From Mobula hypostoma (taxonomy: Eukaryota), in NCBI RefSeq assembly GCF_963921235.1, contig NC_086114.1:1860001-1924000 (forward strand): a DNA stretch of 64,000 nucleotides, given 5' to 3'. Below the pieces are notes generated by a model, which saw only the letters and a list, made by a program, of their open reading frames with translations, did not search any database and was not told where the DNA came from. This document shows, in pieces, positions 6,461 through 55,519 of the stretch (the first letter of the stretch is position 1; each line of letters starts with the position of its first letter). Position numbers and translations under genes: made by a program.

Positions 6461-6519
6461 GTTAGGTACAGTGGTAGAAAGTTTGTGAACCCTTTAGAAT
6501 TTTCTCTATTTCTGCATGA

Positions 6520-7590
6520 CTGACAGGCCTCTGTTGGTCAGAGTTGACCGTGGATGTTGCATCCTAGCTGTCTAAGTACACAAGCCTGGGCAGTACAAAT
6601 TTGAGGAAGGACATTCTAGCTATTGGGGGAGTGCAGCGCAGATTCACGAGGTTAATTCCAGGGATGGTACGACTGTCATATGTTGAAAGATTGGAGCGAC
6701 TGGCGTTGTATACACTGGAATTTAGAAGGATGAGAGGGGATCTGATTGAAACATATAAGATTATTAAGGGATTGGACACGCTAGAGGCAGGAAACATGTT
6801 CCCAATGTTGGGGGAGTCCAGAAAGAGAGGTCACAGTTTAAGAATAAGGGGTAGACAATTTAGAACGGAGTTGAGGAAAAACTTTTTCACACACAGTTTT
6901 GGTTCTGTGGAATGCTGTGCCTCAGAAGGTAGTGGAGGCCAATGCTCTGGATTCTTTCAAGAAAGAGTTAGATAGAGCTCTTAAAGATAGCGGAGTGAAG
7001 GGATATGGGGAGAAGGCAGGAAAAGGGTACTGATTGTGGATGATCAGCCATGATCACAGTGAATGGTGGTGCTGGCTCGAAGGGCCGAATGGCCATTCTG
7101 CATCTATTGTCTATTGTCTATAATATGGAGAGTGAGCTGTTGCTCATATAGTAAGCTACCCTCTCCATGCATCTGATGAACCCAAAGGGACGGCAGAGAC
7201 CAATACAGTTTGGTGCCAATCAGCATTGAACTCAATGTAGGACTACCTTAGGGACTCCAGCGCCAACTTCTTCCCTCTGATTTTACTTCCGAAGCCTTCC
7301 CCAAGACTGAGTTTAGCCGTCAGAGTTTTACTTCTAGATGAGCTGCCAGCCGCAGCTGATGAGCCCTATCTGCCGGAAGCAACTGGATTTAAGGCACCAG
7401 TAACCTGCCTTTGTCCCGTCTCCTGTCAGTAGAAACAGTTCGGCTGGGCTTAGTACCCAAGCCACACATGAAGATCAGGAGCTGGACTTGGTTGTCAGAG
7501 GCTATTTGAGGCATGTCATTGGGAGCATTAATAAGTAGTGGGATCTTGTCCCCATTACCACCCCCCAGCTATAAAAACCTTGGGAAACCA
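6520..7590. mobile_element. Insertion splitting the left Tc1 TIR: probable RTE-type fragment, itself interrupted by a CR1 3' end (about 6598-7120, +)
   Basis: CR1 C-terminus VQRRFTRLIPGM...RGDLIETYKI...RGHSLRI...RKNFFT with (CTATTGT)n tail. The family of the flanking sequence is a tentative call. Confidence 0.65.
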
Positions 7591-8796
7591 TAGATATGAC
7601 TCAAATGTGATCAGATTTTCACGTAAGTATTCATACTAGATAAAGAGAACCTAATTAAACAGATTACACAAAAAAAGACTTTTCATTTATTTATTGAGAA
7701 AAATGATCCAATATTACATGAATTTGTTGGGAAAAGTATGTGAACCTTTGCTTTCAGTAACTGGTGTGACCTTGTAGATTAATAACTTCATTTAAACATT
7801 TCTGCTAATCGTTGATCAGTTCTGCTCATCAACTTGGAGGAACTTTAGGCCGTTCCTCCTTACTAAACTGCTTCATCTCTGATGTTTGCGGGCTTCCTTG
7901 CATGAACTGCTTTCTTCAGTTCCTTCCACAGCATTTCTGTGGGATTAAGGTCAGGACCTGGACTCAGCCCTTACAAAGTGTAAAATTTCTTCTGCTTTAA
8001 CCGTTTTTTTGGTGTACTGACTTGTGTGTTCAGGGGCATTGTTTTGCTGCATGACCCACTTTCTCATGAGCATCAGTTCACAGACGGATGCCCTGACATT
8101 TTCCTGTAGAATTTGCTGGTACAATTCAGAATTTATAGTTCCATCAATAATGGCAAGCCGTCCTGGTCCTGAGGCAGCAAAACAGGCCTAAGGCATGACA
8201 CTGCCACCCCCATGTTTCACAGATGGGATGAGATTCAGTGTTTGCTTTTCACCAAACAATGCTTCTCGTTTAAGCCAAAAAGTTTGATTTTTGGACTCGT
8301 CTGTCCACAGAATATTCTTCCAATAGTCTTCTGGCTTATCCACGTGGTCTTTAGCAAACGGGCCGCAGTGTTCTTCTTGGAGACTAGTGGCTTTCTGCTT
8401 GCAGTCCTGCCATACATACCTTGTTATAGACTCATGAACATTGGTGTTAGCCAATACAAGAGAGGCCTGTAGCTCCTTAAATGTTAGGTGTTCTTTATAA
8501 CCTCCTGGAGTGATTTTTGTTGGTCGACCGCTCATGGGGAGAGTAACATTCCTGTTGAATTTCCTTCATCTGTACACCATCTGCCTGACTGTAGATTGGT
8601 GGAGCCCAAACTCTTCCGAAATGGTTTTCTATCCTTTTATCAAGGCATGACACACTTCCAAAAACCTGTATGGTGAAGGTCAGACTTTGATAGTGAATAC
8701 CCAGGTTTATGTTCTTTAAATAGGGCAGGGCCTCCCACACTCACACCTGATTGTCATCCCATTGATTGAAATGCCTGACTCTAATTTTCCCTTTAA

Positions 8797-8986
8797 ATCA
8801 CCCCCATCATTGCAAAGTGCTTTGAGAGACTGGTTCTATCGTATCTGAAATCCTGTCTGCCCACTACCCTGGACCCCCATCAATTTGCCTATCGCACCAA
8901 CAGGTCTACAGAGGACGCCATCTCCACGGCACTTCACTCTGCCCTGACCCACCTGGACAGCCCCAACTCTTATGTCAGAATGCTTG

Positions 8987-14059: not shown

Positions 14060-15305
14060 AATCCAAATCAGGTTTAATAACACCAGTGTATATCATGAAA
14101 TTTGTTGTTTTGCAGCAGCAGTACATCGCAATACTTGGTATAAGTATGTATTTTTTTAAAAATTAAGCAAGTAGGTCAAAAAGAAAGGGAAATGAATATT
14201 GGGGAAGTGTTCATGGGTTTAATGTCCATTCAGAAATCCATTGGTGGAGGGGAAGAGGCTGTTCCTGAAACGTTGAGTGTGTCTTCAGACTCCTGCACCA
14301 CCACCTTGATGGTAGCAATGAGAAGAGAGCATATCCTGGCTAATAGGGGTTCTTAATGATGGATGCTGCCTTTTTGAGGCATCACCTTTTGAAGGTGTCT
14401 TGTTTGCTGGGAAGGTGCCCATGATGGAGCTGGCTGAGTTTCCAACTTTCTGCAACTTTTTCTGATCCTGTGCAGTGGCCTCTCCAATTCAGATGTTGAT
14501 GCTGTCCATTCTACATCCATAGAAATTTACGAGTGTCATCGTCAAATTTATAGATGGCGTTTGAGCTGTGCCTACCCACACAGTCGATGGTGTTGAGAGA
14601 GTAGCACAGTGGGTTAAACACGCATCCTTGAGGTGCGTCAGTGTTTGTCAGCAAAGAGGAGATGTTATTTCTGATCTGCACAGACTGGTCACTTGGTGAG
14701 CAGCCAAGAGTCCATTTACAGAGGGAGGTGCAGAGGCCCAGGACTTGGAGCTTTTTGATTAGATCAAATAGTATGATTGTGTTGAATGTTGAACCATAGT
14801 CAATAAAAAGCAGCCTGATGTAAGTATTACTGTTGTCCATGTGATCCAACGCTGATTGGATCTGCTGGTAGCTTGCTCCACACTCTTGCCACTTTTTGAG
14901 TGAAGAAGTTCTCCTCAGATTCCCCTTAAGTATTTCACCCTTCACTCTTAACCTCTGACCTAGTTCTAGTCTTGCCCTACCTGAAGGGAAAGAGCCTGCA
15001 TGCATTTACCCTATTTATACCCCTTGTAAATTTTGTGTACCTCTCAAATCTCCCTTCATTCTGCTGTTCCAGGAATAAAGTCCTAATCTTGTCAAACTTT
15101 CCCTTTAACTCGGGTCCTCAAATCCAGGCAATGTCCTTGCAAATTACCTATATTCTTTCAATCTTATTGATATCTCTCCTGTAGGTAGGTGACGTGAACT
15201 GTACACAATAGTACAAATTCGAATTCAACATCTTGTACAACTTGAATGTTGCATCCCAACTCCTGTACTCGGTGTCCTGAGTTCTGAAGGTCAATGTGTG
15301 AAAAG
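14060..15305 (-). mobile_element. Rex1-like fragment (about 14060-14850) abutting a CR1 3' fragment (about 14858-15305)
   Basis: RLLFIDYGSTFNTI...PQGCVFNPL...KFDDDT; YCVQF.SP.YR.DINKIER. Confidence 0.7.
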
Positions 15306-15757
15306 CTGTTCTTTCTCCCAGGAATGGAAGAAGCTTTAATTTAGAAAAAGTGTGATCCTTGATATGAATCATTTCGTGGCCTCATGTTTCCCCTGAAGAA
15401 AAGAGCTGAGGCCATTAAATAAGAGTCCTGATAATGTCTCTGCCTGAAATGTTGACTGTTTATTCATTTCCATAGATATTGCCTGACCTGCTGAGTTCCT
15501 CCAGCATTTTGTGTGCTGCTTTAGCTCTCTCTCATAACCATCTCCAGCCCTACAACCTTTTGAGATATTTCTGCTTCAGTTCTGACCTTCTGACCATTCC
15601 AGAACACAATTACTTCAGGGATGGCAGATGCCAAGGCCTCAACCTCTGAACCCCTTCCATAGCCTTTTCACTCCTCCCTCTTTGAAGATGCTGCTTAAAT
15701 GATTTGCCCTGACATCTCCTTATCTGGATTGACATAAATTTTTAGTTTATTACCGTT

Positions 15758-20504: not shown

Positions 20505-20972
20505 AAATCTTTTGGGGTCATTTATTACATCCAGTGCTTCCTGATGGGGCCTCTTCTACATGGGTCAGACCTGGCACAAATTGAGTGACAGCTTTGTCGA
20601 ATACCTCTGCTCCATCTGCATAAAGGGGAATTTCCTGGTGGCCAAGTGTTTTATTTCAATTCCCATGGCAGTTCATGGCCTCCTCGTGTGCCATGGTGAG
20701 GCTACTCTCAGGGTGGAGGAGCAACACTTCATATTCCATCTGGGTAGCTTCCAACCTGATGGCATGAACATTGATAATTCCCCCCCCCCCCCGCCCTGCA
20801 CCTTTTTATTCTGGAGTTTTTTCCCCCTTCCTTTCCAGTCCTGAAGAAGGATCTCATCCTGAAATGTTGACTGTTCACTCTTTTTCATGGATGCTGTCTG
20901 ACCTGCTAAGTTCCTCCAGCATTTTGTATGTGTTGCCTTGGATTTCCAGCATCTGCAGAATTTCTTGTTTTT
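20505..20972 (+). mobile_element. Old Penelope-like 3' fragment (GIY-YIG remnant plus hammerhead tail)
   Basis: HGLL.CHGEATLRVEEQHFIFHLGSFQPDGMNID, followed by CAGTC-CTGAAGA-AGGATCTCATCCT-GAAATGTT-GACTG at 20836-20873. Confidence 0.8.
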
Positions 20973-21729: not shown

Positions 21730-23800
21730 GTAATCAGAGGACAAAGTGACCAGCCCTCAATAAGTATACCACTTTAGACACTGCTGAGGGTTTTAACTTA
21801 CCAGGAGGAGCCACAGTGACTGGGATTCTTTCACTGAGTCTGGTGCTGTGGCTCAGAAGAGCAGAAAGCTGAGGTGGTCAACAGTGTTGATAGGAGATTC
21901 AATAATCTGAGACATGGGGACATGGGTGTGATTTCAAGATCAGGATGGAATGTTGCTAGGGTCAGGGATGTTGCTGATCGGGTCCATGGCAATCTAAAGT
22001 GGGAGGGTCTTGGTACACATTGGCACCAAGGACATGGGTAGAAAAAGTAAGGAGGTTCTAAAAAGAGACTTTTAGAGAACTAGGTAGAAAGCTGAAAAAC
22101 AGGATCTCCAGAGTAGTTGTGATTGCTGGGTTACTGCCCATGCCACGTGCCAGTAAGGGTAAGAATAGGTAAGAATTTTATGTATATATTCTTTGTCATG
22201 CTGCAAAACATTGAGCTGCTAAACTGTGTTTCATTGCTCCACAACAATGACAATAAAGATCATCTTCTTCTTCTTCAGGATGATTTGGCAGGAGAATATA
22301 TCCTGAGGTGTAGGGGGCAGGGGTTCAGATTTGTACATTATTGAGAACTGTTCTGGGGAAGATATGACCTGTACCAAAGGGACAGGTTACACCTAAACCA
22401 GAGGGGAACCAATATCCTTGGGAACAGGAGTGATAGTGCTGAGGATGAGGTAGTTGGTTCACAAACAGAGCAGTGTGTAGCAAGACTCCTAGCAAAGAGA
22501 GGCTGATGATACTACAAAATTGCAGTCAACAGGCTGAGTTGCAACATAAAAGGCAGACAAAATCAAAAAGAGTGAATACAGGACTGAAGGTGTTGAATTT
22601 GAATGCACGCAGTACACACAATGAGGTAGATGAACATGAAGGACAGTTACAGATTGGCATGTTTGGTGATGTGGGCATCACTAATCCATGGCTGAAAGAA
22701 GATTGTAGCTGGGAGCTTAACATCCAAGGATATACATTGTATCAAAAGAACTGATAGGTAGGTAGAAGGAGTGGTGTGGATCTGCTTTTTTTTTAAATTA
22801 TATCAAATCATTAAAGAAGTGAAAAAATGATATCAAATCATTAGAAAGAGGTGACACAGGGTTGAAAGGTGTTGATTCGTGGATAGAGCTGAAGAGCTGC
22901 AAGGGTAAAAAGGCCCTGATGGGAGTTGTACAAACCCCCAAACAGCAGTAGGGATGTGGTCTACAAATTAGAATGTGAGATAGAAACTGCATAGGGAAAA
23001 AGCAATGATACAATTGTCATGGGGGATTTCAATATGCACGTAAATTGGGAAAATCAGGTTAGTGCTGGATCCCTGGAGGAGATGTCTATGAGATGGCTTT
23101 TTAGTGCAGCTTGCAGTTGAGCCCACTAGGAGATCAGCTATTCTGAATTTAGTGTTGTGCAATAAACTGGAATTGATTAGAGAGCTTAAGGTAAAAGAAC
23201 TCTTGTGGGAGCGGGGGGGGGCGGTGGGGGGGGGAGTGATCATAATATGATCGAATTCACTCGGAATATTGAGAAGCTAAAGTATTATGGAGAATTCAAA
23301 GCCAACTTGAAAGCCAAAGAGAAGGCCTATAATAGAGCAAACTTTAGTGGGATTAGAGGATTCAGAAACTTTAAAAAAAAACAATAGAAGGAACTAATAA
23401 AAAGTCATTAAGAAAAGATGGAATATGAAAGTAAGCTAGCCACAAAGTGTAAAAGAGAGACGAGAATTGATATCAATGAGAAATGCTAGAGAGGTAGTAA
23501 TGGGGAACAAGGAAATGGCAGAAGAACTGAATAAGTATTTTGCACCAGTCTTCACTGTGGAAGACACTAGCAGTAAGCTGAAAGTTCAAGAGTGTCAGGG
23601 GTCATACGTGTGTGAAGTTGCCGTTACTAGGGAGAAAGTTCTTGGGGAAACTGGAAGGTTTGAAGATGGACAAGTTACCTGGACCAGATGGTGCATACCC
23701 CAAAGCTCTGAAGGAGGTGGCTAAAGAGATTGTAGAGGCATTATTAATAATCTTTCAAGAATCATAAGGTTCCAGAAGACTGGAAAATTGCAAATGTCCC
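21730..23800 (+). mobile_element. Degraded CR1 LINE (ORF1 esterase-like and ORF2 endonuclease regions)
   Basis: VIGDS and VHIGT.D remnants; LNARS, MGDFN, SDHNMIEF, MAEELNKYF. Confidence 0.75.
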
Positions 23801-24109
23801 TGTACTCCACTATTACACTAATACATCTGACTTTAGCTTCTCCTCAAATTTCACAGTGAATTTGATCATGTTATGATCACTTGCCCCTAAGGGTTCTTTG
23901 ACCATAAGGTTGCTTATCAATTTTAGTTCATTGCACAACACCAATCGAGAATAGCTGCCATGATTCAGTGATGCCTACAACATCATACTTACCAATTTGT
24001 GTGCTGCAAGTTTGTCTACAGTACCTTATTCCGTAGACTGTGTGCATTCAAATACAACACCTTCGTATGTGTATTCAGCAGGCCAAGCAGCATCTATAGG
24101 AAGAGGTAC

Positions 24110-24145
24110 AGTCGACGTTTCAGGCCGAGACCCTTCGTCAGGACT
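24110..24145 (-). ncRNA. Minimal hammerhead ribozyme motif (mirror copy in the left palindrome arm)
   Basis: Reverse complement reads AGTCCTGACGAAGGGTCTCGGCCTGAAACGTCGACT, identical to 26173-26208. Confidence 0.78.
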
Positions 24146-25139
24146 AACTGAAGGAAGAGTGAGTAAGGGATTTGAAAGCTGGAGGGGGAGGGGGAGATGC
24201 AAAATGATAGGAGAAGACAGGAGGGGGAGGGATGGAGCCGAGAGCTGGACAGGTGATAGGCAGAAGGGGATACGAGAGGATCATGGGACAGGAGGTCCGG
24301 GAAGAAAGACGGGGGGGGGGTGACCCAGAGGATGGGCAAGAGGTATATTCAGAGGGACAGAGGGAGAAAAAGGAGAGCGAGAGAAAGAATGTGTGCATTA
24401 AAAAGAGTAACAGATGGGGTACGAGGGGGAGGTGGGGCCTAGCGGAAGTTAGAGAAGTCAATGTTCATGCCATCAGGTTGGAGGCTACCCAGACGGAATA
24501 TAAGGTGTTGTTCCTCCAACCTGAGTGTGGCTTCATCTTTACAGTAGAGGAGGCCGTGGATAGACATGTCAGAATGGGAATGGGATGTGGAATTAAAATG
24601 TGTGGCCACTGGGAGATCCTGCTTTCTCTGGCGGACAGAGTGTAGATGTTCAGCAAAGCGGTCTCCCAGTCTGCGTCGGGTCTCACCAATATATAAAAGG
24701 CCACATCGGGAGCACCGGACGCAGTATATCACCCCAGTCGACTCACAGGTGAAGTGATGCCTCACCTGGAAGGACTGTTTGGGGCCCTGAATGGTGGTAA
24801 GGGAGGAAGTGTAAGGGCATGTGTAGCACTTGTTCCGCTTACACGGATAAGTGCCAGCAGGGAGATCAGTGGGGAGGGATGGGGGGGACGAATGGACAAG
24901 GGAGTTGTGTAGGGAGCGATCCCTGCGGAATGCAGAGAGAGGCGGGGAGGGAAAGATATGCTTAGTGGTGGGATCCCGTTGGAGGTGGCGGAAGTTACGG
25001 AGAATAATATGTTGGACCCGGAGGCTGGTGGGGTGGTAGGTGAGGACCAGGGGAACCCTATTCCTAGTGGGGTGGTGGGAGGATGGAGTGAGAGCAGATG
25101 TACGTGAAATGGGGGAGATGCGTTTAAGAGCAGAGTTTT

Positions 25140-25877
25140 TCATTTTTTAAAGAAAGGGGCTTCCCTTCCTCCACTATCAACTCTGCTCTTAAACGCATCT
25201 CCCCCATTTCACGTACATCTGCTCTCACTCCATCCTCCCACCACCCCACTAGGAATAGGGTTCCCCTGGTCCTCACCTACCACCCCACCAGCCTCCGGGT
25301 CCAACATATTATTCTCCGTAACTTCCGCCACCTCCAACGGGATCCCACCACTAAGCATATCTTTCCCTCCCCGCCTCTCTCTGCATTCCGCAGGGATCGC
25401 TCCCTACACAACTCCCTTGTCCATTCGTCCCCCCCATCCCTCCCCACTGATCTCCCTGCTGGCACTTATCCGTGTAAGCGGAACAAGTGCTACACATGCC
25501 CTTACACTTCCTCCCTTACCACCATTCAGGGCCCCAAACAGTCCTTCCAGGTGAGGCATCACTTCACCTGTGAGTCGACTGGGGTGATATACTGCGTCCG
25601 GTGCTCCCGATGTGGCCTTTTATATATTGGTGAGACCCGACGCAGACTGGGAGACCGCTTTGCTGAACATCTACGCTCTGTCCGCCAGAGAAAGCAGGAT
25701 CTCCCAGTGGCCACACATTTTAATTCCACATCCCATTCCCATTCTGACATGTCTATCCACTGCCTCCTCTACTGTAAAGATGAAGCCACACTCAGGTTGG
25801 AGGAACAACACCTTATATTCCGTCTGGGTAGCCTCCAACCTGATGGCATGAACATTGACTTCTCTAACTTCCGCTAG
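25140..25877 (+). pseudogene. 5'-truncated PLE ORF: RT C-terminus, Cys-rich linker, GIY-YIG endonuclease (mirror copy on - at 24439-25137)
   Basis: Open frame SFFKERGFPSSTINSALKR...PLVLTYHP...PCKRNKCYTC...FTCESTGVIYCVRCSRCGLLYIGETRRRLGDRFAEHL...EEQHLIFRLGSLQPDGMNIDF*. Confidence 0.88.
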
Positions 25878-26172
25878 GCCCCACCTCCCCCTCGTACCCC
25901 ATCTGTTACTCTTTTTAATGCACACATTCTTTCTCTCGCTCTCCTTTTTCTCCCTCTGTCCCTCTGGATATACCTCTTGCCCATCCTCTGGGTCACCCCC
26001 CCCCCCCGTCTTTCTTCCCGGACCTCCTGTCCCATGATCCTCTCGTATCCCCTTCTGCCTATCACCTGTCCAGCTCTCGGCTCCATCCCTCCCCCTCCTG
26101 TCTTCTCCTATCATTTTGCATCTCCCCCTCCCCCTCCAGCTTTCAAATCCCTTACTCACTCTTCCTTCAGTT

Positions 26173-26208
26173 AGTCCTGACGAAGGGTCTCGGCCTGAAA
26201 CGTCGACT
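26173..26208 (+). ncRNA. Minimal type-I hammerhead ribozyme motif in the PLE 3' tail; predicted cleavage after C26204
   Basis: Stem I AGTC/GACT flanks the core CTGACGA (26177-26183), stem II AGGGTCTCGGCCT, GAAA (26197-26200), palindromic ACGT stem/loop III and a GUC triplet. Confidence 0.8.
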
Positions 26209-26426
26209 GTACCTCTTCCTATAGATGCTGCTTGGCCTGCTGCGTTCACCAGCAACTTTGATGTATGTTGCTTGAATTTCCAGCATCTGCAGAATTCCTG
26301 TTGTTTTCGTATGTGTATTCGTCCTTTTGGATGTCGTCCACCTTTTCGATTGCAACTCACCCTGTGGACGACAATTTTGCCTTATCAACGTAAGATGTAA
26401 GGGCACATTAGGCCATTCAGCCCATC

Positions 26427-27021: not shown

Positions 27022-29029
27022 GTTTGCTCTGCCATTCCATCATGGCTAATCCCGGATTTCACTCAACCCCATACACCTGCCTTCTTGCCATATCCTTAAA
27101 TGCCCTGACCAATCAGGAAACTCAACTTCTGCCTTAAATATACCCACAGACTTTGCCTCCACCACAGTCTGAGGCAGACCATCGCACAGATCTACTACTG
27201 TCTGGCTAAATAATGTCTCCTTACCTTATTTCTGAAAGGTCGTCCCTCAGTTTTGAGGCTGTGCCCTGGAGTTCTGGATACCTCCACCGCAGGTAACATC
27301 TTCTCGAGATCTACCCTATCTAGTCCTATCAACATTCGGTAGGTTTTAATGAGATTCCACCCCCCCCCCGCATTCTTCTAAATTCCAGTGAGTACAGCCT
27401 CAAGCTGCCAAACGCTCCTCATGATTATTTCTTATATCCTTCACATACATGAGGAGTTAAAATCTTTGTTATGTCTGTCTGAATGTGCAGTTTATAGTAA
27501 TTTGTAATATATAGTATGTACTACAGGACAGTCAATATAGCATAGAAATACAGTTGTATCAGTGTGAATTAATCATTCTGATGGTCTGGTGGAAGAAGCT
27601 GTCCCGGAGCCTGTTAGTCCTGGCTTTAATGCTGCAGTACCGTTTCCTGGATGGTAGCAGCTGGAACAGTTTGTGGTTGGGTGACTCCTAGGTCCCCAAT
27701 GATCCTTCAAGCCCTTTTTACACTAATGTTAACCCCTCATTCCTGGAATCATCTTCGTGAACCTCCTCTGGACTCTTCAATGACACACATCCTTTCTGAG
27801 ATATGGGACCCAAAACTGTTGACTTGTGCAGCCTGACTAGTTTCTTATAAAACTACAGTATTACCTCTTTGCTTTTGTATTCAATTCCCCTTGAAATAAA
27901 TAGCAACATTGTATTTGCCTTCTTTACCACAGAGTCAACCTGTAACAGCCTCTCCTCACAGCTACCTCATCTTCAGCACTATCTGCCTTTCCTAATATAC
28001 TTCTTGCATTTACGTATATCTTATATAAAGGTTGATAGATTCTTGATTGGTCAGGGCATGAAGGGATACAGGGAGAAGGCAGGAGACTGGGGCTGAGAGG
28101 GAAAATAGATGAGCTATGATGAAATGACAGAGCAGACTCGATGGGCCAAATGGCCTAATTCTGCTCCTATAACTTCTGGTCTAACAAAGATGTCAGTAAA
28201 AACAACTCAAGTTTAATAAATGAATCTGAGAGCAAGTACTTCTAATGGGCTGCCAATAGGTAATATATCTTGAGGATTTAACATGGAATGTGGATACTCC
28301 TCTTATTCTGTAACTTTTATTAATATTGCTTTCCTAGATTGCATACCGGGCAAGTTCAGATGGCAAACAAAAATCATTCTGACAATGGCTACAATCTGAA
28401 GTTTGAACTGTGTTTTTCTCTCCACAGATGCTGCCTGCCCAGCTGAAAATTTCAGATTTCAGACATATTACTTTTAAATTTGTGATTTGATTATTAGTTT
28501 GTCATTTGTAAATTTTCCTAACAGATAGATAGATAACATCCTGAAGACAACCAGTGAATTGTGACAATATCTCCGTGCCCCAAATTCAGTTTATTAATTA
28601 TATGTATATTCAAATCTATATTATTAAATAACACATCTCATGCCTCATATTTGCCTGCTAGCAACTGCTTTTAGTGTAAATAGTTGTTTGATTGAAAGAT
28701 GTTTTGAGGAAGATCTCACAGAGATCATTAATATGCTATGATGTAAACTATTTTGCTAATGATTTTAGTCATTACTGTGACAACAGTGAAACAAAATTGC
28801 AGAATGCTAGTGAATTAAATAATTTCCACTAAAGTCAATCTGACCTGAATAATAGTCCGTGCCACTCGGACTTGTGCTAATATTATTTTGTGATTATATG
28901 TCCTGTGTGTGACTATGTCCTGTGTTTTGCACCTTGGCCCCAGAGGACCAATGTTTCATTTAGACATATGCATGTGCATGGTTGAATGACAATAAACTTG
29001 AACTTGAATAAACTTTTTTTAAAAAGTCA

Positions 29030-32339: not shown

Positions 32340-34700
32340 TCCAACCATCACTTCCTCCCCCTCCCTCTCCCCAACCCCCAATCTCCTCCTCCCCAACTCC
32401 CTATCTCTTCCCCACTCCCCATCCCCCATCTCCTCCCCACTCCCCGTCCCCATCTCCTCCTCCCCACTCCCCATCCCCATCTCCTCCCCACTCCCCATCC
32501 ACCATCTCCTCCCCACTCCCTATCCCCATCTCCTCCTCTCTCCCCTCCCCATCTCCTCCCCACTCCCCATTCTCCATCTCCTCCCCATTCCCCATCCCCA
32601 TCTCCTCCCCACTCCCCATCCCCCATCTCCTCCCCATCCCCATCCTCATCTCCTCCCCATCCCCATCCCCATCTCCTCCCCACTCCCCATCCCCATCTCC
32701 TACTCACTCCCCATCCACCATCTCCTCCCCATATCCCCATCCCCTATCTCCTCCCCACTCCCCATCTCCTCCTCTCTCCACTCCCCATCTCCTCCCCACT
32801 CCCCATCCTCCATCTCCTCCCCATTCCCCATCCCCATCTCCTCCCCACTCCCCATCCCCCATCTCCTCCCCACTCCCCATCCCCATCTCCTCCTTCCCAC
32901 TCCCCATCCCCCATCTCCTTCCCATCTCCCCATTCCCTATCTCCTCCCCACTCCCCATACCCCATCTCCTCCCCATCCCCACCCCCATCTCCTCCCCACT
33001 CCCCATCCCCATCTCCTCCCCACTCCCCATCCCCCCTCTCCTACCCTCTCCCCATCCCCATCTCTTCCCCACTCCCCATGCCCCATCTCCTCCCCACTCC
33101 CCATCCCACATCTCCTCCTCCCCACTCCCCATCCCCCATCTCCTCCCTACTCCCCATCCCCCTCTCTCCTCCCCACTCTCCATCCATCTCCTCCCCTCTC
33201 CCCATCCCCATCTCCTCCCCACTCCTCATCCATCTCCTCCCCATCCCCCATCTCCTCCCACACCCCATCCCCCCATCTCCTCCCCACTCCCCATCCCCCA
33301 TCTCCTCCTCCCCACTCCCCATCCCCTGTCTCCTCCCCACTCCCCCTCCCCATCTCCTCCCACTCCCCATGCCCCATCTCCTCCCCACTCCCCATCCCCC
33401 ATCTCCTCCTCCCCACTCCCACCCCCGTCTCCTCCCCACTGCCCATCCCCCTATCTCCTCCCCACTCCCATCCCCCATCTCCTCCCCACTCCCCATCCCC
33501 ATCTCCTCCCCATTCCCCATTGCCCATTTCCTCCTCCCCATCCCCCATCTTCTCCCCACTCCCCATCCTCATCTTCTCCCCACTCCCCATCCATCTCCTC
33601 CCCACTCCCCATCCCCATCTCCTCCCCATCCCCATCTCCTCCCATCTCCCCATCCCCTATCTCCTCCCCTCTCCCCATCCCTCATGTACTCCCCACTCCC
33701 CATCTCGTCCCCACGCCCCATCCCCCATCTCCTCCCCACTCCCCATCCCCCATCTCCTCCCTACTCCCCATCCCCCTGTCTCCTCCCCACTCATCCATCT
33801 CCTCCCCTCTCCCCATCCCCATCTTCTCCCCACTCCCCATCCATCTCCTCCCCATCCCCCATCTCCTCCCCTCTCCCCATCCCCATCTCCTCCCCACTCC
33901 CCATCCCCCATCTCCTCCCTACTCCCCAACCCCCCGTCTCCTCCCCACTCCCCATCCCCATTTCCTCCCCACTCCCCATCCCCATCTCCTCCCTACTCCC
34001 CACCCCCCTGTCTCTCCTTCCTACTCCCCATCCCCCTGTCTCCTCCCCACTCCCCATCCATCTCCTCCCCACTCCCCATCCCCCATCTCCTACCCATCCC
34101 CATCTCCTCCCATCTCCCCATCCCCTATCTCCTCCCCCTCCCCATCCCTCATGTCCTCCCCACTCTCCATCCCCATCTCCTCCCCAATCCCCATCCCCAT
34201 CTCCTCCCCACTCCCCATCCCCCATCTCCTCCCTACTCCCCATCGCCCTGTCTCCTCCCCACTCCCCATCCCCATCTCCATCTCCTCCCCACTCCCCATC
34301 TCCACCCCACTCCCCATCCCCCATTTCCTCCCTACTCCCCATCCCCCTGTCTCCTCCCCACTCCCCGTACCCCATCTCCTCCCCACTCCACATCCCCATC
34401 TTCTCCCCACTCCCCATCCCCATTTCGTCCCCACTCCCCATCCTCCATCTCCCCCCCTCCCCATCCCCCATCTCCTCCCCCTCCCCATCCCCCATCTCCT
34501 CCCCACTCCCCATCCCCATCTCCTCCCCTCTCCCCATCCCCCATCTCCTCGCCACTCCCCATCCCCCATCTCCTCCCCACACCCCATCCCCCCATCCCCT
34601 CCCCATCCCCCATCCGCCATCTCCTCCTCCCCACTCCCCATCCCCCATCTCCTCCCTCTCGCCCTCGCCCTCCCCATCTCTCTTCTTCTCCTTCCCTCCA
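32340..34700. repeat. ~2.35 kb pyrimidine-rich minisatellite (unit about CTCCTCCCCACTCCCCATCCCCCAT)
   Basis: Direct tandem repetition; the + strand is almost free of G. Confidence 0.95.
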
Positions 34701-38153: not shown

Positions 38154-38798
<645 letters not shown>

Positions 38799-39704
38799 TT
38801 ACGGCCCAGGAAGAAACGCGACTCCCTCCCTGACAGATCCTAGCGGCACCATGTCAGAGATTCCCCCCGTACTGGCCGTTCACACGGGGGTACAACCGGT
38901 TCCACAGATAAACTGGTCATTCACGGGTCATTCTGGGAATAAGGCGAGTCCCCTCACCCCCCAGGGAAAGCCAATTTACCGGGAACTCCTCCCAAGCACT
39001 AAGTCACGACAGAGTGGGGTACCGTCTTTTCGGGTGGTAACTCCTGCCTGGACCCAAGTTATCGTTCTTCCGAGGCGAGTTACTCGCTTCAGCGCCGGTT
39101 TTGACCCACACCATTCCGCTTTTTAACGCACGCCGCAGTGCTTATTGTTAAACTAATTATACCTTCGAAACTATGTCCTATCCTAGCTTCACGCGAGCAC
39201 GGAAATTTCTCGGTGTTCCGGTGTATTTGACAATAAACTGTTTCACATTAAAATTCCCAAACTCTGTTGTCTTACTCTTCGTGCGTCCGCCCCACCCGCC
39301 CGCTCCGCTCTCGTTCGGCGCCGCATTTAGCCGCGACTAGTTTAAAGTGAGTTGGGGTCGGTTTGGGGGAATGGGGCAACTCTGGGATCACTTTCCGAGC
39401 TGCCGCCGGGGCGGGGGGTGGGTACCGGAGCTGCAGACAATTCGACCCAATCGGCGCTGAACCGAGCGGGCGGAATAATGAGCCCACAAACGAGAGAAAA
39501 TCTGCAGATGCTGGAAATCCGAGCAACACACACAAAATGCTGGAGGAACTCAGCAGGCCAGGCAGCGTCTATGGAAAAAAGTACAGTCGACGTTTCGGGC
39601 CGAAACCCGTCTCCCAGTCATGGGGGTTTCTCCCTCCCACTCCCCACACCGCACCGGAGAGTGCCAGATTCCCCTCAGGCCACCGCCCAGTTCCCAGTAC
39701 TCAC

Positions 39705-40107
39705 TTGCCGGAGGAGAGTAGCCGGCGTTCGGAACCCACGCCGACACGTCCTTCTCGTTCGTACTTTCCGAGTCGAGAGAGCAGGAATTCTCCGACAAGT
39801 TTTGGAGTTCCTCCGCCGAGCAGCTCCTACCAGGATACTCAGTCCGGGAGCACGGCTGCTCCTTGAGGCCGACAGGCGGGACGGGCACCTCGGGGAGAAC
39901 GACTTGAGTCCTGGGGAACCTCCGATCCGATATCAGGGACTCGACGCTGAACGAGAGGCTGGCCATTGTACATCCTTTCGAGTCGCCAGGAACCCCGTCG
40001 CCACAGTCTCGCCCCTTCTCTGGCGTTTCCCAGCTTTTCTCCCGCTCGTCCGTATCCTGGGTCAGAGGTCCCGGCGGAGAATTCATCCCGCGGAAGGATG
40101 GGGCCAT
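39705..40107 (-). CDS. msx3: Msx homeobox protein, exon 1 (MAPSFRGMNSPPG...SFSVESLISD eh1 motif...WVPNAGYSPPA)
   Basis: ATG at 40107. eh1/Groucho motif FSVESLIS. Donor GCAA|GTGAGT, phase 1, joins exon 2 in frame to give 272 aa. Confidence 0.88.
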
Positions 40108-40229
40108 ACACCTCCGGAAAGCGAGCGCGACCCTGCCCTCAGTCCGGCCCCGCTGACATGGGAGCGCCCCGTCACCCAGATCGCAACCTCCTGATGGGAA
40201 ACTCGCTCTGGAACTTTTGCAAACTTGGA

Positions 40230-40600
40230 GCCCAGTTGGTCGCTTTAAACATTTCGGATCCTTCCTGTCATCCGAGTCGCCTCCAATGAGCGGCCCCGCT
40301 CGGGCTTCTGACGGCGGCAGAGCGGCCGCGATTGGCTTCCAGCTCGGAAAAAGAACAATCAACATCTGGGAGGCACTGAAGAGCGGACAGAGATTGCTCG
40401 CTGGGCACGTTTGCTGAAAGCCCCAGGGCTGGAATCTCCGACCAAACCGGCCGCAGTTTCAACGCAATTAAACCGTAAAGGAGCCTTGAGCCAGGACCCG
40501 CTCCCTCTGCGGAAATTTACCGAAAACAGACGCCGCAAAATGAAATCACCTCCGCGAGGAGAATGTGACAGCAAATTTCCGCATTCTACATCCTCAGACA
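40230..40600 (-). promoter_or_regulatory. msx3 proximal promoter
   Basis: TATA-like TTTAAA 40244-40249; opposed CCAAT boxes at 40283-40287 and 40331-40335; GC-rich, with Smad-like GGCGTCTG near 40527-40534. Confidence 0.5.
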
Positions 40601-40619: not shown

Positions 40620-41800
40620 ACACTCTCCCACCTCCTCCTCACTCAGTCACCCTCCTCCTCACTCAGTCATCCTCCTCACCCTCTTCCTCACTCCTCCACG
40701 TCCTCACTCATCCTCCTCCTGCTCCACACTCCCCCACCTCCTCCTCACTCAGTCATCCTCCTCACTCAGTCACCCTCCTCCTCACTCAGTCATCCTCCTC
40801 ACTCAGTCATCCTCCTCCTCACTCAGTCACCCTCCTCACTCAGTCATCCTCCTCACTCAGTCATCCTCCTCCTCACTCAGTCATCCTCCTCCTTCTCACT
40901 CAGTCACCCTCCTCCTCACTCAGTCACCCTCCTCCTCACACAGTCACTCTCCTCCTCACTCAGTCACCCTCCTCCTCACTCAGTCACCCTCCTCCTCACA
41001 CAGTCACTTTCCTCCTCACTCAGTCACACTCCTCCTCACTCAGTCATCCTCCTCACCCTCTTCCTCACTCCTCCGCGTCCTCACTCATCCTCCTCCTGCT
41101 CCACACTCCCCCACCTCCTCCTCACTCAGTCATCCTCCTCCTCACTCAGTCTCTCTCCCCTCACTCAGTCATCCTCCTCCTCACCCTCTTCCTCACTCCT
41201 CCACGTCCTCACTCCTCCTCCACACTCTCCCACCTCCTCACTCAGTCACCCTCCTCCTCACTCAGTCACCCTCCTCCTCACACAGTCACTCTCCTCCTCA
41301 CTCAGTCACCCTCCTCCTCACTCAGTCACCCTCCTCCTCACACAGTCACTTTCCTCCTCACTCAGTCACCCTCCTCCTCACTCAGTCATCCTCCTCCTCA
41401 CTCAGTCATCCTCCTCCTCCTCACTCAGTCATCCTCCTCCTCCTCACTCAGTCACCCTCCTCCTCACCCTCTTCCTCACTAACCCACCTCACTCCTCCGC
41501 ATCCTCACTCGCCCTCCTCCTGCTCCACACTCTCCCACCTCCTCCTCACTCACCTTCCTCCTCCTCCTCACTGAGTCACCATCCTCCTCAATCTCCTCCT
41601 CACATGCTTCCTCACTCACCCTCTTCCTCATTAACCCACCTCCTCACTCACTTGCCTTCCTCATTTGCCCTGCTCCTCACTCTTTCTCCTCCCCCTCACA
41701 CTCCACATCCTCACTCTCCTTCTCACTCACCTTCATCACCCCCTTAACCTCACTCTCCTCCTCACTCACCCTCCTCCTCCTCATGCACCCTCCTCCACAG
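40620..41800. repeat. ~1.2 kb minisatellite (unit about CTCCTCCTCACTCAGTCAYC) just upstream of the msx3 promoter
   Basis: Direct tandem repetition of an 18-24 nt unit. Confidence 0.92.
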
Positions 41801-41814
41801 ATCTCAGCTCGCAT

Positions 41815-44800
41815 CAGTAATGATCTTTCAAGAATCGCTAGATTCTGGAATGGTTCTGGAAGTTTGGAACATTGCAAATGTCACTCCACTCTTCAGGAAG
41901 GGAGAGAGGCAGAGGAAAATAAACTATAGAACAGTTAGTCTGATCTCAGTGGTTGGAGTTGATTGCTAAGGATGTGTTTCTGGGGTATTCGGAGGCACGT
42001 GATTTAAAAAGGCTGTAGACAGCATGATTTCCTGAAGGGAAGGTCTTACCTGACAGTTCTGATGGAATTCTTTGAAGAAATAACAAGCAGGATTGACAAA
42101 GTGAACGTTGTGCACTTGGGTTTTCAGAAGGCCTTAACAAGGCGCCACACATGAGGCTGCTTAACAAATTAAGAGCCTATCGTATTTCAGGAAAGATTCT
42201 AGCATGGATAGAGCATTGCTGGTTAGCAGGAGGCAAAGAGCAGGGATAAAGGGGGCCTTTTCTAACTGGCTGCCGGTGACTAGTGGTGTTCCACAGGGGT
42301 CTGTGTTGGAACTGATTCTTTTTACATTATATGTCAATGACTTGGACAGAACTGATGGCTTGAGGCAAAATTTACAGACAATACAAAGATAGGTGGAAGG
42401 GCTGGTAGTTTTGAGGAAGTAGAGAGGCTACAGAAGGAATTAGTTAGATTAAGAGAATGGGCAAAGAAATGGCAGATGGAATACAGAGTCAGGATGTATA
42501 CGGCCATGTACTTTGGTAGAAGAAATGAAAAGGATGACTATTTTCTACATGGAGATGAAAATACAAAAATCTGAGGTGCAAAGGGACTTGGGAGTCCTTG
42601 AACAGGATTCCCTAAAGGTTAATTTGCAGATTGAGTCTGTGTTGAGGAAGGCAAATACAGTGTTAGCGTTCATTTCAAGAGGACTAGAATATAAAAGCAA
42701 GGATGTAATGTTGATACTTTATAAAGCACTGGTGAGGCCTCACTTGGAGTATTGTGAGCAGTTTTGGGTCCCTTAGCTTCGAAACGACGTGCTGAAACTG
42801 GAGAGGGTTCAAAGGAGGTTCACAAAAATGATTCCAGGATGGAAAGGCTTGTCATAGGAAGAGTGATGGCTCTGGGCCTCCGCTCACTGGAGTTCAGAAG
42901 AGGTGGGGTGACCTCATTGAAACGTATCGGATGTTGAAAGGCCTGGTAGGGTGGGTGTGGAGAGGGTGTTTCCCATGGTGGGAGAGAAAGGCCTGGTAGG
43001 GTGGGTGTGGAGAGGGTGTTTCCCATGGTGGGAGAGAAAGGCCTGGTAGGGTGGGTGTGGAGAGGATGTTTCCCATGGTGGGAGAGAAAGGCCTGGTAGG
43101 GTGGGTGTGGAGAGGGTGTTTCCCATGGTGGGGGGGGGGGAGGCCTGGTAGAGTGGGTGTGGAGAGGGTGTTTCCCATGGTGGGGGGGGGAAGGCCTGGT
43201 AGAGTGGGTGTGGAGAGGGTGTTTCCCATGGTGGGGGGGGGAAGGCCTGGTAGAGTGGGTGTGCAGAGGATGTTTCCCATGGTGGGGGGGGGGAAGGCCT
43301 GGTAGAGTGGGTGTGCAGAGGATGTTTCCCATGGTGGGGGGGGGGGGAAGGCCTGGTAGAGTGGGTGTGCAGAGGATGTTTCCCATGGTGGGGAGGGGGG
43401 GAAAGGCCTGGTAGAGTGGATGTGGAGAGGATGTTTCCCATGGTGGGGGGGAGAAGGCCTGGTAGAGTGGGTGTGGAGAGGGTGTTTCCCATGGTGGGGG
43501 GGGGAAGGCCTGGTAGAGTGGGTGTGCAGAGAATGTTTCCCATGGTGGGGGGGGGAGGCCTGGTAGAGTGGGTGTGGAGAGGGTGTTTCCCATGGTGGGG
43601 GGGGGAGGCCTGGTAGAGTGGGTGTGGAGAGGATGTTTCCCATGGTGGGAGAGAAAGGCCTGGTAGGGTGGGTGTGGAGAGGGTGTTTCCCATGGTGGGG
43701 GGGGGGGAAGGCCTGGTAGAGTGGATGTGGAGAGGATGTTTCCCATGGTGGGAGAGAAAGGCCTGGTAGGGTGGGTGTGGAGAGGATGTTTCCCATGGTG
43801 GGGAGGGCGAAAGGCCTGGTAGGGTGGGTGTGGAGAGGGTGTTTCCCATGGTGGGGGGGGGGGGAAAGGCCTGGTAGAGTGGGTGTGGAGAGGATGTTTC
43901 CCATGGTGGGGGGGGGAAGGCCTGGTAGAGTGGGTGTGGAGAAGATGTTTCCCATGGTGGGGAGGGGGAAAGGCCTGGTAGGGTGGGTGTGGAGAGGATG
44001 TTTCCCATGGTGGGGAGGGGGAAAGGCCTGGTAGGGTGGGTGTGGAGAGGATGTTTCCCATGGTGGGGGGGGGGAAGGCCTGGTAGAGTGGGTGTGGAGA
44101 GGATGTTTCCCATGGTGGGGAGGGGGAAAGGCCTGGTAGGGTGGGTGTGGAGAGGATGTTTCCCATGGTGGGGAGGGGGAAAGGCCTGGTAGGGTGGGTG
44201 TGGAGAGGGTGTTTCCCATAGTGGGGGGGGGAGGCCTGGTAGAGTGGGTGTGGAGAGGATGTTTCCCATGGTGGGGGGGGGGAAGGCCTGGTAGAGTGGG
44301 TGTGGAGAGGATGTTTCCCATGGTGGGGGGGGGGTGGGAAGGCCTGGTAGAGTGGGTGTGGAGAGGATGTTTCCCATGGTGGGGTGGGGGTGGGGGGGAA
44401 AGGCCTGGTAGAGTGGGTGTGGAGAGGGTGTTTCCCATGGTGGGGGCGGGGGGGGGGGGGAAGGCCTGGTAGAGTGGATGTGGAGAGGATGTTTCCCATG
44501 GTGGGGGGGGGAAAGGCCTGGTAGGGTGGGTGTGGAGAGGGTGTTTCCCATGGTGGGAGAGAAAGGTCTGGTAGGGTGGGTGTGGAGAGGGTGTTTCCTA
44601 TGGTGAGGGAGTCTAAGACCAGAGGACACAGCCTCAGAATAGAGGGGCATCCTTTCAGAACAGAGAAGAAGAGGGATTTCTTTAGCCAGAGAGTGGTGAA
44701 TCTGTGGATTTTGTTGTCACAGGAGGCCGTGGAGGTCGAGTCATTGGGTATATTTAGGCACAGGTTGAAAGATTCCTGACTGGTCAGGACACGAAGGAAT

Positions 44801-44920: not shown

Positions 44921-47900
44921 TCACACCCAACCTCCTCCGAAGCCAGGGCTTGAGCTAATAGCCAAGGTATTTAATCAATAGACCGATGATATCGTGGAAG
45001 GCGCCGGCCGCGGTCACATCAATCGCCGAAGCGACGTTGGGGTAACAGGCAGAAGTTAACTCCACAACCAACTGTCCTTAAAACGTCCATGTCTACTATA
45101 CGTATTTCCCCGATCACTCTCACCCCGTCACCGGAGACATTCCCTCAACCCATGGGTATAGTTTTAAAACGTTTCCTGTACCGCACACATCATCATTCAT
45201 ATATCAGACATTTTCTGTACCGAGAAACCTTTTCCAGTTTAATTTCCAGCCTGGCTTTCCTTGCGCGCTATGATTAACGATCGGAAGAGATGCCGCTTTG
45301 GTCACGGAAATATCTCCTTCCTTCGGCTCTCTCGCTGTTCTGCTCCGAATTAAATGTCGTGCGTGCTGGAAACGGCCTGAGATTGTGTTCACTGGAATAC
45401 AACTCAGAAATACACCGTAAACCCTCGCGTTACCGTTCCCTGAGCTCCGGCCACCGCTACCGGGCCTGCCGGTGTACATTTACAGTTGCCGGCCGGGCCC
45501 GCACAGCTCTGAAGTGCTTGTCCGTTTCAGGCTCGGGTCTCTCGGGCTTTTTTTTAGGCCCTGAATCTCGAAGGTGTTTCTCCTCATTTCTCGACCTCTG
45601 GATCGACTCTGAATTGTTCAGCGAGATCCCCAGTGACGGCTCATTTGCCAATGGGTATACTTTGGAAGAAACCCTGGCGGCGAGTTCGCCGTGTGAGGGT
45701 TGCTAAAGTATAACGTGAATTTCAATGAACTGATTCCGTTCAATCGGTGCCGGTGTTCCCGTGTGGTTCGGAATTTACTGGACCTTTTGATATTGATGTT
45801 AACTTCACTGTGTCTGCTATTAACTAGACAGTTTTTTAAAATTAATGTTAACTTGACTATCAGTCTAACTGATCGTTATGAACGCGACCGTTTGATATTA
45901 ACATTAACTTGACTATAGGTTTAGTTTAGTGAACTGTGTAAACTAGCCAGTATGATATTAAAGTCTGGGGTAACACGGCATGAGTGAGAGGAGACGGAGT
46001 CGAGACTTTCCGCGACAGAACAAGTCACGGACGAGGGTTCCTCCCCCCCCCCCCCACCGTCCGTGGGGAGAGGAAAGGGTGGAGTTTGCAATCTCTACAG
46101 CGCGCCATGGTGCATATTCTGAAATTTGGGAACGATTTATCGCAGGCCTCACTAATCTGAAGCAGTTCACGGGAGATGTCTCAGTAGCGTTTGAACTTTA
46201 TTTTGCCTTGTTTTCGTTTTACCTTGTTCTTCCTCAATGCACTGCGTAGCCGATCTGTATAAACAGTATGCAAGAGAAGCTTTTCACTAGATCTGGTACA
46301 TATGACAAAAATTTCAAAAAACAACAAATTTCAGACATATATTAAACTTGATTGCGATTTTAATTCTGAACCAATTTAACACCCGTGTTCCATAGATAGG
46401 TGACGACACGGCGACCAGTTGGGCACTGACATCCTGATGAAGGGTCTCGGCCAGGAATGTCGACCGTTTCTCTTTCCCATGTAGACGCTGGCCGGCCCGC
46501 TGGGTTTGTGTGTGTAGCACTGACGTCCCCGGGTCTGACTCAGAAAGCTCGCCAACCGAAGTAAATCTGTAATTTCCAAAATGAAAAGGCGAGAGCTCGC
46601 TAAACTTTGAAGTATTTCCGTTCCATATTTCAAAGGCAAGTTAAGTTTCGATGTCCTCTTCAATTATCACCCTTCATTACAACACATGAACAACCCAAAC
46701 ACTAACATTTAACACGTTATAGATTTCCGCTGGAGTCGGAGCCAATTGTGCTCGTTTCGTTTGACCACACACTGAAATACTTTCTTCGTACGATCGGCAA
46801 ACCCATTGACAAATATCTGCAAAGTTTTAAACCAAATAAGTAAAAAATTGAAACCTCTTGTTTGACGCGCACAATCCTCTCCCCCTCCCCAGATGTGCCT
46901 ACGGTAATACCTGTCCGGGGAACGGTTCTTTCAACTGGATTTTTTTTTGTTCTACCGCTTCTGTTCTTCTTTGGGCAGTAAATGTATGTTTTTGGGTAAC
47001 CTGAGAATGCGGCGAATTTGCAGCAATTTTGCCGGCCGCTCGCTGTTCACATCCCGACATATTGAACTGATTCTCGTCGAAGTAACTCAACTAACCTGAC
47101 ATTTCAGAATCTTCAAAGCGAGTTGGTGCTTATGGGACCTTTTTACTGTGAATAGTCGTAAGTGTCAGGAAGAAAGGCAGTTTGTGGAATAATAAAATGC
47201 CTTCAAATGGAAATAAAGATGTCACAATAAATTAACATGGTAACGTGCAAATGGAATTAAAACGAAACAGAGAAACTCTAGATCTGAACCCTCCTCCTCA
47301 TACCCGCCGCTAAAAGACTCGGCCGTTCTCGGTACTTTGTTCCGGTCAGCTCTCCGCTGCGGACTGTTAAAATCTTCCCTCTTATCTGTCACTCTGAAAT
47401 TGTTCGCCAATGCCCGCGTCCGCGGGGAGAAAAGGCGCCTCAAAAGTTTCATAAGCTGTTGATTTGTTGAAAGAAAATCAGGGAATATGTTTTGTTTTCG
47501 TTCTCCGCTCGTTGGGCTTGTTGAACGCGGAGAGATCCGCAGGTCCGTCCCCAAACAAATCAATGCCAGATATTTTTTTAAAAACGCTTTATTTTTACCG
47601 GTGGATAATCTGATCCTCGGGCCGATGTGTGTTCAACGAATTGGGCACTAAATATTCTTCACTTTACAATAACCGTACTTCCCCTGGTTTGAATCCCGGG
47701 GATTTATACGTGCGGAGATGAGGTCGTGTCGGTAGTGTGGAATTAACACAGGGCGCTCCGCTCAATCCGTCAGACTCGGCAGTGACACGCGGGGATGTAG
47801 GTAAACATGGAGAAGTGATCAGTGCATCAAATTAGGACAAATTACATTGCCAATTAACTTATTCCCGTTGAATCTAAACTGTATTAAACTGGGTGAAATC

Positions 47901-49275: not shown

Positions 49276-49765
49276 TGTATCTCACCAGATTGATTCCTGG
49301 AATGGCAGGACTTTCATATGATGAAAGACTGGATGAACTAGGCTTATACTCGTTGGAATTTAGAAGATTGAGGGGGAATCTTATTGAAACCTATAAAATC
49401 CTAAAGGAATTGGACAAGCTAGATGCAGGAAGATTGTTCCCGATGTTGGGGAAGTCCAGAACGAGGGGTCACAGTTTGAGGATAAAGGGGAAGCCTTTTA
49501 GAACCGAGATTAGGAAAAACTTCTTCACACAGAGAGTGGTGAATCTGTGGAATTCTCTGCCACAGGAAACAGTTGAGGCCAGTTCATTGGCTATATTTAA
49601 GAGGGAGTTAGATATGGCCCTTGTGGCTAAAGGGATCAAGGGGTATGGAGGGAAGGCCGGTACAGGGTTCTGTTGGATGATCAGCCATGATCACACTGAA
49701 TGGCGGTGCAGGCTCGAAGGGCCGAAGGGCCTACTCCTGCACCTATTTTCTATGTTTCTATGTTA
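49276..49765 (+). mobile_element. Young CR1 3' fragment
   Basis: Uninterrupted TRLIPGMAGLSYDERL...RGHSLRI...FFTQRVVNLWNSLP; (TTCTATGT)n tail. Confidence 0.88.
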
Positions 49766-55415: not shown

Positions 55416-55519
55416 ATGGAGACTGGAACATTAAACTCAAAACAGAAACCTTGTGAATGCTGAACGGGCCAGTCAGTGTCCGCGGAGAGAGAGACGTTCA
55501 ATTTCCAGCCTAGGACCAT

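Follow-up and report, generated by a model that had tools for sequence, protein, structure and literature searches.

A minimal type-I hammerhead motif at the ends of decaying Penelope-like elements in the ray Mobula hypostoma

The DNA analysed here, referred to as the window, is a stretch of 64,000 nucleotides of Mobula hypostoma (NC_086114.1, positions 1,860,001 to 1,924,000 of the forward strand). At 24077-26305 it carries a near-perfect palindrome with arms of ~1.06 kb that are at least 99% identical and lie 41 nt apart. The left arm (24077-25137, minus strand) is the 3' part of a 5'-truncated Penelope-like element (PLE) that stops 63 nt before the full 3' end, and the right arm (25179-26305, plus strand) reaches the long 3' end. 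Two 15-bp copies of TTCGTATGTGTATTC (direct-repeat family D7), at 24062-24076 and 26306-26320, flank the palindrome as a target-site duplication (TSD). Because the whole palindrome sits inside one such duplication, it represents a single insertion event of two inverted 5'-truncated copies, and the hammerhead cores in its arms, at 24110-24145 and 26173-26208, are therefore not independent. The same design recurs in miniature at 123-370, where a minus arm extends to ~249 and a plus arm begins at ~247, inside stem II of the hammerhead, between 15-bp TSDs at 108-122 and 371-385. Sub-threshold Rfam microRNA matches (MIR2118, MIR8643, MIR1507 and mir-423; E 1e-4 to 7e-6) fall at 25073-25242 and 174-282. 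They were rejected as microRNA precursors, since each of these intervals is the middle of an inverted PLE insertion. Fold-backs of inverted PLEs mimic microRNA precursors in loose RNA-family scans, and they could yield small RNAs.

The PLE origin of the palindrome is legible in its coding sequence. The C-terminal 234 codons of a PLE open reading frame (ORF) occupy 24439-25143 (minus strand), where Pfam and direct reading identify a CX4CX2C linker, read as CKRNKCYTC, and a GIY-YIG endonuclease (Pfam E 1.5e-4; 22.4 bits, the cut-off being 22.6). Its mirror image in the other arm, the frame at 25173-25877 (plus strand), differs from it by two residues. Both features that define PLE membership, a C-terminal GIY-YIG domain with a CCHH motif and a CX2-5CxxC linker, are thus present. 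The hammerhead lies 298 nt 3' of the end of the endonuclease ORF, on the same strand. A search of 5.8 billion proteins returned 121 homologues of this ORF, many with PF26215 or PF01541, and one of them (P0073) carries RVT_1. The nearest relatives are ray proteins, from Hypanus sabinus (84% identity) and from Mobula hypostoma itself (91% over part of the length); among the remoter ones are proteins of a skate, a shark and the coral Oculina patagonica (50%), along with many from unidentified animal contigs. Both arms of the palindrome end before the reverse transcriptase (RT). The sole RT fragment in the window, at 14511-15005, looks LINE-like, and no full-length PLE with a reverse transcriptase was found in the 64 kb.

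Several other features share the window. An Msx-type homeobox gene lies on the minus strand, with exon 2, which encodes the homeodomain (Pfam E 1e-22), at 38154-38696 and a probable exon 1 at ~39700-40365. Three long C/T-rich or G-rich minisatellites with a strong strand bias occupy 32386-34656 (94 units of 25 nt), 40631-41682 (47 units of 20 nt) and 42938-44609 (32 units of 50 nt); these arrays push the GC skew to -0.65 over 32-36 kb and create numerous long ORFs that are spurious. At 59691-60332, a LINE coding part has been expanded into a satellite of 15 tandem 42-nt units, each encoding a C-terminal motif of LINE ORF2 that is intact in the ORF at 49275-49868. Shark-type LINE fragments occur elsewhere in the window and, like the Msx exon, agree with the batoid ray host to which the closest protein relatives point.

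The hammerhead of the right arm (copy A, 26173-26208, plus strand) can be read directly from its letters as AGTC, CTGACGA, A, GGGT-CTCG-GCCT, GAAA, CGTC and GACT. AGTC and GACT form stem I, an extra A follows CUGACGA, GGGU-CUCG-GCCU makes up stem II, the palindrome ACGU follows GAA, and C17 is position 26204, after which a cut in this copy would be expected to fall. A search pattern comprising the two core boxes and the CGTC site, CTGANGA-N(8-20)-GAAACGTC, found three exact minimal type-I cores in the 64-kb window, at 24114-24141 (minus), 26177-26204 (plus) and 57999-58026 (plus), compared with no match in 100 dinucleotide-preserving shuffles. A looser descriptor added only two matches outside the family in the 128 kb of both strands. 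These cores belong to copy A, which also scores 54.7 bits with a covariance model; to copy B in the mirror arm (24110-24145, minus), which has the same sequence and is likewise matched by the model; and to copy H (57995-58030, plus; 56.1 bits). In all three, CUGANGA and GAAA in type-I order and H17 after U16.1 are exact, and both boxes are also kept in the older copy E. ACGU directly follows GAA in every intact copy, as it does in every foreign locus discussed below.

These results bear out the sequence-only reading in its claim that every conserved hammerhead nucleotide is present in type-I order. Its count of three intact cores stands as a count of exact matches, although only two are independent, 24110-24145 and 26173-26208 being arms of one insertion. 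The cores also differ in detail. Copies A and B have a G.U at 10.1-11.1, where G10.1-C11.1 is canonical, as in the 57999 copy and in five of five foreign loci; the G.U is consistent with CpG decay. Copy H retains the canonical pair, has A in place of G1.1 and has the 5' strand of its stem I cut by the end of the insert, so that its stem I is without the 1.1-2.1 pair. Comparison with the Rfam 15 hammerhead entries, which the earlier reading had also proposed, matched no family at gathering score or at E<=10, either over the whole window or with a 141-nt excerpt; variants with a loop-less helix III appear to fall outside the coverage of the curated models. The identity of the motif as the minimal type-I hammerhead of PLE ends is confirmed.

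Many more copies surround the intact ones. A nhmmer profile built from the repeat copies brought up 15 family members within the window, all with E below 2e-4, and together with covariance model R1 of the ribozyme part it recovered all nine of the decayed or partial copies that had been listed from the letters alone, giving ~11-13 insertion events within 64 kb. The minus arm of the small inverted pair holds a hammerhead at 183-218 (scan match 175-224; 48.6 bits) in which GAAA has become GAGA, and its plus arm holds a partial motif at 246-269, found with both the profile and the model. On the plus strand, both methods also detected the strongly decayed copy K (2512-2583; scan match 2497-2546), copy I (15424-15522; scan match 15418-15465), which has lost G8 and has the short 3' end, and copy G (46426-46517; scan match 46424-46473), with GAAA changed to GGAA and the same short end. 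Copy E (20678-20972, plus; scan match 20831-20879) is older, belongs to a second subfamily and includes an ORF-derived piece at 20678-20774; its core is formally complete, with helix III as AUGU and a GUU cleavage site after CpG decay. Copy L (53903-53987, minus; scan match 53943-53991) keeps CUGAUGA and GAAA, has lost the CGUC part and runs on upstream into UTR sequence of subfamily 2. Both E and L were found by profile and model alike.

Two PLE tails lie in the Msx intron, neither with a working hammerhead core. Copy J (38648-38758, plus; profile and model) is antisense to the gene and starts within stem II, with an inverted tail piece in front of it, and copy F (39487-39621, minus; scan match 39577-39622; profile and model) is in the sense orientation with its CUGANGA box destroyed. 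Three further fragments, consisting of tail without a ribozyme part, lie at 55422-55520 (minus), 28396-28446 (plus) and 50234-50266 (minus). An extra match of covariance model R1 at 22253-22288 was rejected as a GAA-rich low-complexity stretch, and the model found no second hammerhead family in the window. Directly 5' of helix I lies a polypyrimidine tract ending in CAG/YAG, at 26155-26172, 228-221 (minus arm), 20822-20836 and 53999-53988 (minus). The tract is seen in every copy that extends upstream, copy A has the initiator-like string TCAGTT at this place, and the TSD-defined solo insert starts at the next nucleotide.

The window copies are relics in decay, with most of the wear at CpG sites. 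The 36-nt motif contains five CpGs, and variation relative to the majority reaches 24% in CpG columns, compared with 12.1% in the other motif columns (9.1% in the core) and 19.2% in the tail. Because the CpG columns are the most variable, single copies are taken to be decaying, chiefly by CpG transitions, as exemplified by the changes from GAAACGTC to GAAATGTT and from CCCGAAA to CCTGAAA.

The 3' ends of the copies fall into two classes 35 bp apart, with five copies in each among the ten that are informative. Copies D, G, H, I and L stop near the equivalents of 26262-26272 in the 26173 copy, and copies A, C, E, F and J at those of 26292-26305, so that the optional tail extension of 35 bp (26271-26305, plus strand) is absent from the former and present in the latter. 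Both inverted pairs (24077-26305 and 123-370) have the long end on the plus arm only. The short class includes copy H, a solo insertion of 98 bp (57993-58090) that consists of the hammerhead and the tail to the short 3' end, within a 12-bp TSD (57981-57992 and 58091-58102). A one-sided optional extension, inverted partners with truncated 5' ends and hammerheads in terminal repeats are hallmarks of PLEs (PMC8557442), and two internal start sites of reverse transcription have been shown biochemically for an Anolis PLE (PMC11167929). The two 3' ends of the ray copies correspond to these two start sites and match the published PLE "tail" signature. On this reading, reverse transcription had two possible internal start points, the equivalents of 26270 and 26305, which yields the optional 35-bp tail. 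Many copies were 5'-truncated or placed as back-to-back inverted pairs within one target duplication of 12-15 bp, and since insertion they have been decaying neutrally, most rapidly at the motif's five CpGs. Within the tail, a hairpin at 26238-26255 (UGCUG ... CAGCA) has a stem in both subfamilies and a loop that reads CGUUCAC or AGUUCCUC; its stem letters are invariant and therefore provide no evidence of covariation. A second candidate, an 8-bp complement between 26223-26230 and 26281-26288, was dropped as a tail stem, being unused in the predicted fold and broken in copy F.

Distant relatives place the motif in a wider context. The DNA around seven distant relatives of the ORF was compared, namely one coral locus and six contigs of unidentified animals. 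At seven of eight endonuclease ORF ends, the same boxes recur in a motif 85-314 nt further downstream on the same strand; the exception is the most distant locus (L007, 35% identity), with no motif within ~1.2 kb downstream. In three of these loci the element carries a hammerhead in each of two repeats: the arms are inverted in L005 (1318-1369, minus, and 3748-3799, plus) and in L006 (1754-1803, minus, and 3873-3922, plus), and L003 has direct terminal repeats (523-572 and 3713-3762, both plus). The adjacent protein is only 41-50% identical in these loci, yet none of them departs from CUGA, GA, the extra A, G10.1, GAA or ACGU. Helix I, in contrast, is fully replaced between loci (AGUC/GACU, UUACA/UGUAA, UCCA/UGGA, UCU/AGA and AUACCA/UGGUAU), and helix II is partly replaced. 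In an alignment of seven sequences that were chosen by a descriptor demanding some pairing (A3), 82.9% of cells are paired, compared with 66% after shuffling and 21-43% after sliding. Both sides have changed in seven of ten pairs of that alignment, and its covariation score of 0.619, against 0.275, was reached by none of 500 shuffles. The constant place of the motif beside the ORF is independent of the pairing descriptor. A search of metagenome and viral contigs with the exact pattern gave no further copies.

Invariant cores together with covarying stems I and II, across ray, coral and other animal PLEs, indicate from comparative evidence that the RNA structure is under selection in the source elements. 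The opposite view, that the motif is a chance resemblance inside a repeat with no ribozyme ancestry, could draw on the failure of the Rfam hammerhead families to match and on the ease with which short motifs may arise by chance. It is refuted by the shuffles, which gave no match in 100 against the three observed, by the recurrence of the motif at the equivalent place in remote PLEs and by the compensatory changes there, and the looser descriptor with its two off-family matches leaves it hardly conceivable. A different question is whether the fold is kept for catalysis at all. It might instead serve as a structured site on which the PLE protein binds or is positioned near the RT entry, the core being retained for its shape or as a passenger. 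In the Anolis PLE, the hammerhead is cut only with the element protein, catalytic mutants left insertion in vitro unchanged, and RNA-seq reads neither start nor end at the cleavage site (PMC11167929); Naiad and Chlamys PLEs thrive without hammerheads, and ribozymes have been suggested to parasitise PLEs (PMC8557442). The predicted energies given below, which disfavour the active fold, point the same way. However, the helices differ in sequence between ray and coral and exactly the catalytic nucleotides (CUGA, GA, GAAA and U-H at the site) do not, which is the pattern to be expected of a working ribozyme, and monomers of PLE hammerheads from fungi and plants cleave well (PMC4209133). A purely structural role is thus possible but unlikely.

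The architecture of the motif constrains how it might act. Helix III consists of the self-complementary ACGU without a loop, and a single copy could therefore not close the three-way junction. An active site would form only between two copies that pair through ACGU and the strands of helix I, whether these sit on one tandem or read-through transcript or on two separate RNAs, and help from the PLE's own protein would probably be needed too. The cut would then come after C17 (C26204) and could serve in the processing of multimeric transcripts. We infer dimer formation, protein help, the cleavage position and multimer processing from published work on other PLEs. As the sequence-only reading maintained, minimal palindromic hammerheads that cleave as dimers are established for PLEs, and the published design matches the one found here (PMC4209133). 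The minimal hammerhead of metazoan PLEs cleaves weakly and only as dimers or multimers (PMC4209133; PMC6765202), with dimer cleavage attributed in the latter source to Lunse et al. (2016). Nearest-neighbour folding gives the monomer a minimum free energy of -11.6 kcal/mol, with the core GACG paired to CGUC, against -7.6 kcal/mol for the hammerhead fold. The double hammerhead is predicted at -12.7 kcal/mol, whereas two separate monomers reach -23.2 and an extended duplex -31.5. A dimer fold with an intermolecular 4-bp helix III is thus possible, yet disfavoured by predicted energy. Such a disfavoured active fold would agree with the low activity published for this class and would not count against ribozyme ancestry. 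At the window loci themselves, ribozyme activity appears unlikely, given that the near-perfect 1.06-kb palindrome sets A and B on opposing strands, that stem I of the 57999 copy is broken and that nothing is tandem.

The density of copies had led the sequence-only reading to speak of ribozyme-derived SINE-like elements, a description that proves unnecessary. No tRNA-like sequence or pol III head was found with ARAGORN, the copies consisting of PLE tail sequence only, and no head-to-tail array of the hammerhead unit occurs in the window, every copy there being solo or inverted. Upstream, A/B, D, E and L run on into PLE UTR or ORF sequence, so that most copies are plain truncated or inverted PLE ends. 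A narrower proposal is that the short copies form a separate non-autonomous family, SINE-like or a mini-retrozyme, of ~98-135 bp, moved in trans by PLE proteins. Its 5' end would be fixed at the first helix I nucleotide (26169-26173 equivalent), the ribozyme edge being a transcription start or an intron end. In copies F, G, H and I, four of ~11 events, upstream similarity to both subfamilies does end within a few nucleotides of the 26171-26177 equivalent; the 5' end of copy H is set by its TSD at 57993; and TCAGTT with a polypyrimidine tract ending in CAG lies exactly at this boundary. In the Penelope of Drosophila virilis, the 5' edge of helix I coincides with the end of an intron (PMC4209133), and animal retrozymes have been traced to PLE terminal repeats in a 2026 preprint (bioRxiv 10.64898/2026.07.22.740005). 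Nevertheless, the short unit is the PLE tail itself with no added head, no tRNA-like part and no tandem array; A/B, D, E and L reach further upstream, as ordinary 5' truncation predicts; and the copies are few and the boundary was spotted post hoc. A discrete unit with this fixed edge is improbable; if it were real, a self-contained retroposon of ribozyme plus RT-entry site would exist beside randomly truncated copies.

The preferred reading is that the carrier is a Neptune-like family of endonuclease-bearing PLEs, with the motif as the minimal, dimer-dependent type-I hammerhead of their terminal repeat and its fold selected in the source elements; this is very probably correct. The original attribution to a Penelope tail is upheld by the GIY-YIG ORF end upstream, the inverted 5'-truncated arms, the TSD, the optional tail and the same motif in PLE relatives. 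The family is also abundant in RNA libraries. Contigs from libraries of the same species (runs X5 and X10-X12) place 3,589-8,904 pieces per run on a 2.6-kb stretch, with summed word depth on the tail four orders of magnitude above that of unique flanks, and many different flanks follow 26303-26308 and 26265-26273. Such depth shows a very abundant repeat in RNA libraries, which is not proof of autonomous transcription. Two other organisms, sequenced in a related study (X21 and X22), had no tail reads at 80% likeness among 1.3-1.5 billion letters of raw DNA, which suggests either that the family is lineage-restricted or that those species are unrelated.

The finding matters mainly for annotation, in that a very abundant ray repeat is the end of a hammerhead-bearing PLE that curated Rfam models miss. 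It also extends the conservation of the loop-less, obligate-dimer hammerhead design from ray to coral, and it offers a clean natural example of the two-start-site tail signature known biochemically from the Anolis PLE. The understanding of how PLE ribozymes work is unchanged.

Among known systems, the minimal hammerhead of metazoan PLEs (min-HHR; Cervera and De la Pena, 2014, PMC4209133) is alike in its type-I order, short helix I and 4-bp helix II, the extra nucleotide between A9 and G10.1, the palindromic 15.x-16.x (ACGU) and the missing loop of helix III. It likewise occupies a terminal repeat downstream of the RT-EN ORF and occurs mostly as solo dispersed copies of truncated elements, with some close pairs on opposite strands. 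The published consensus has G10.1-C11.1 and thousands of solo copies per genome (PMC4209133), whereas the ray family differs in the G.U at 10.1-11.1 of its youngest copy, its five CpGs, its fast decay and its batoid host. Poseidon PAc of Anolis carolinensis (PMC11167929) is also a GIY-YIG PLE with a hammerhead, and its tail of ~30-40 bp from two RT start sites parallels the ray tail of 35 bp (26270 versus 26305 equivalents). The PAc ORF starts inside the hammerhead; the ray motif lies ~300 nt past the stop codon of a truncated copy whose 5' end is outside the window. The CX4CX2C linker of the ray ORF is typical of the Neptune and Nematis clades, unlike Poseidon.

Animal non-LTR retrozymes are similar in being short non-coding units with type-I hammerheads that are related to PLEs and co-occur with them (PMC7229834; bioRxiv 10.64898/2026.07.22.740005). 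They form head-to-tail arrays of 170-400 bp, with canonical hammerheads held by loop-loop contacts and with circular RNA (PMC7229834; bioRxiv 10.64898/2026.07.22.740005); in contrast, the ray copies are solo or inverted, TSD-flanked and minimal, with no array in the window. Among the joints listed from assembled RNA-library contigs, none was a unit-length back-joint. PLE-related retrozymes have been reported in one cartilaginous fish (bioRxiv 10.64898/2026.07.22.740005). The Schistosoma Sm-alpha and Sj-alpha elements, as summarised in PMC6765202, are short dispersed retroposons with a hammerhead too; according to that summary their hammerhead is canonical and a promoter head of their own precedes it, whereas the ray copies are without such a head. 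The literature searched contained no paper describing the family in rays. Overall, the ray element is a lineage-specific member of a well-described kind.
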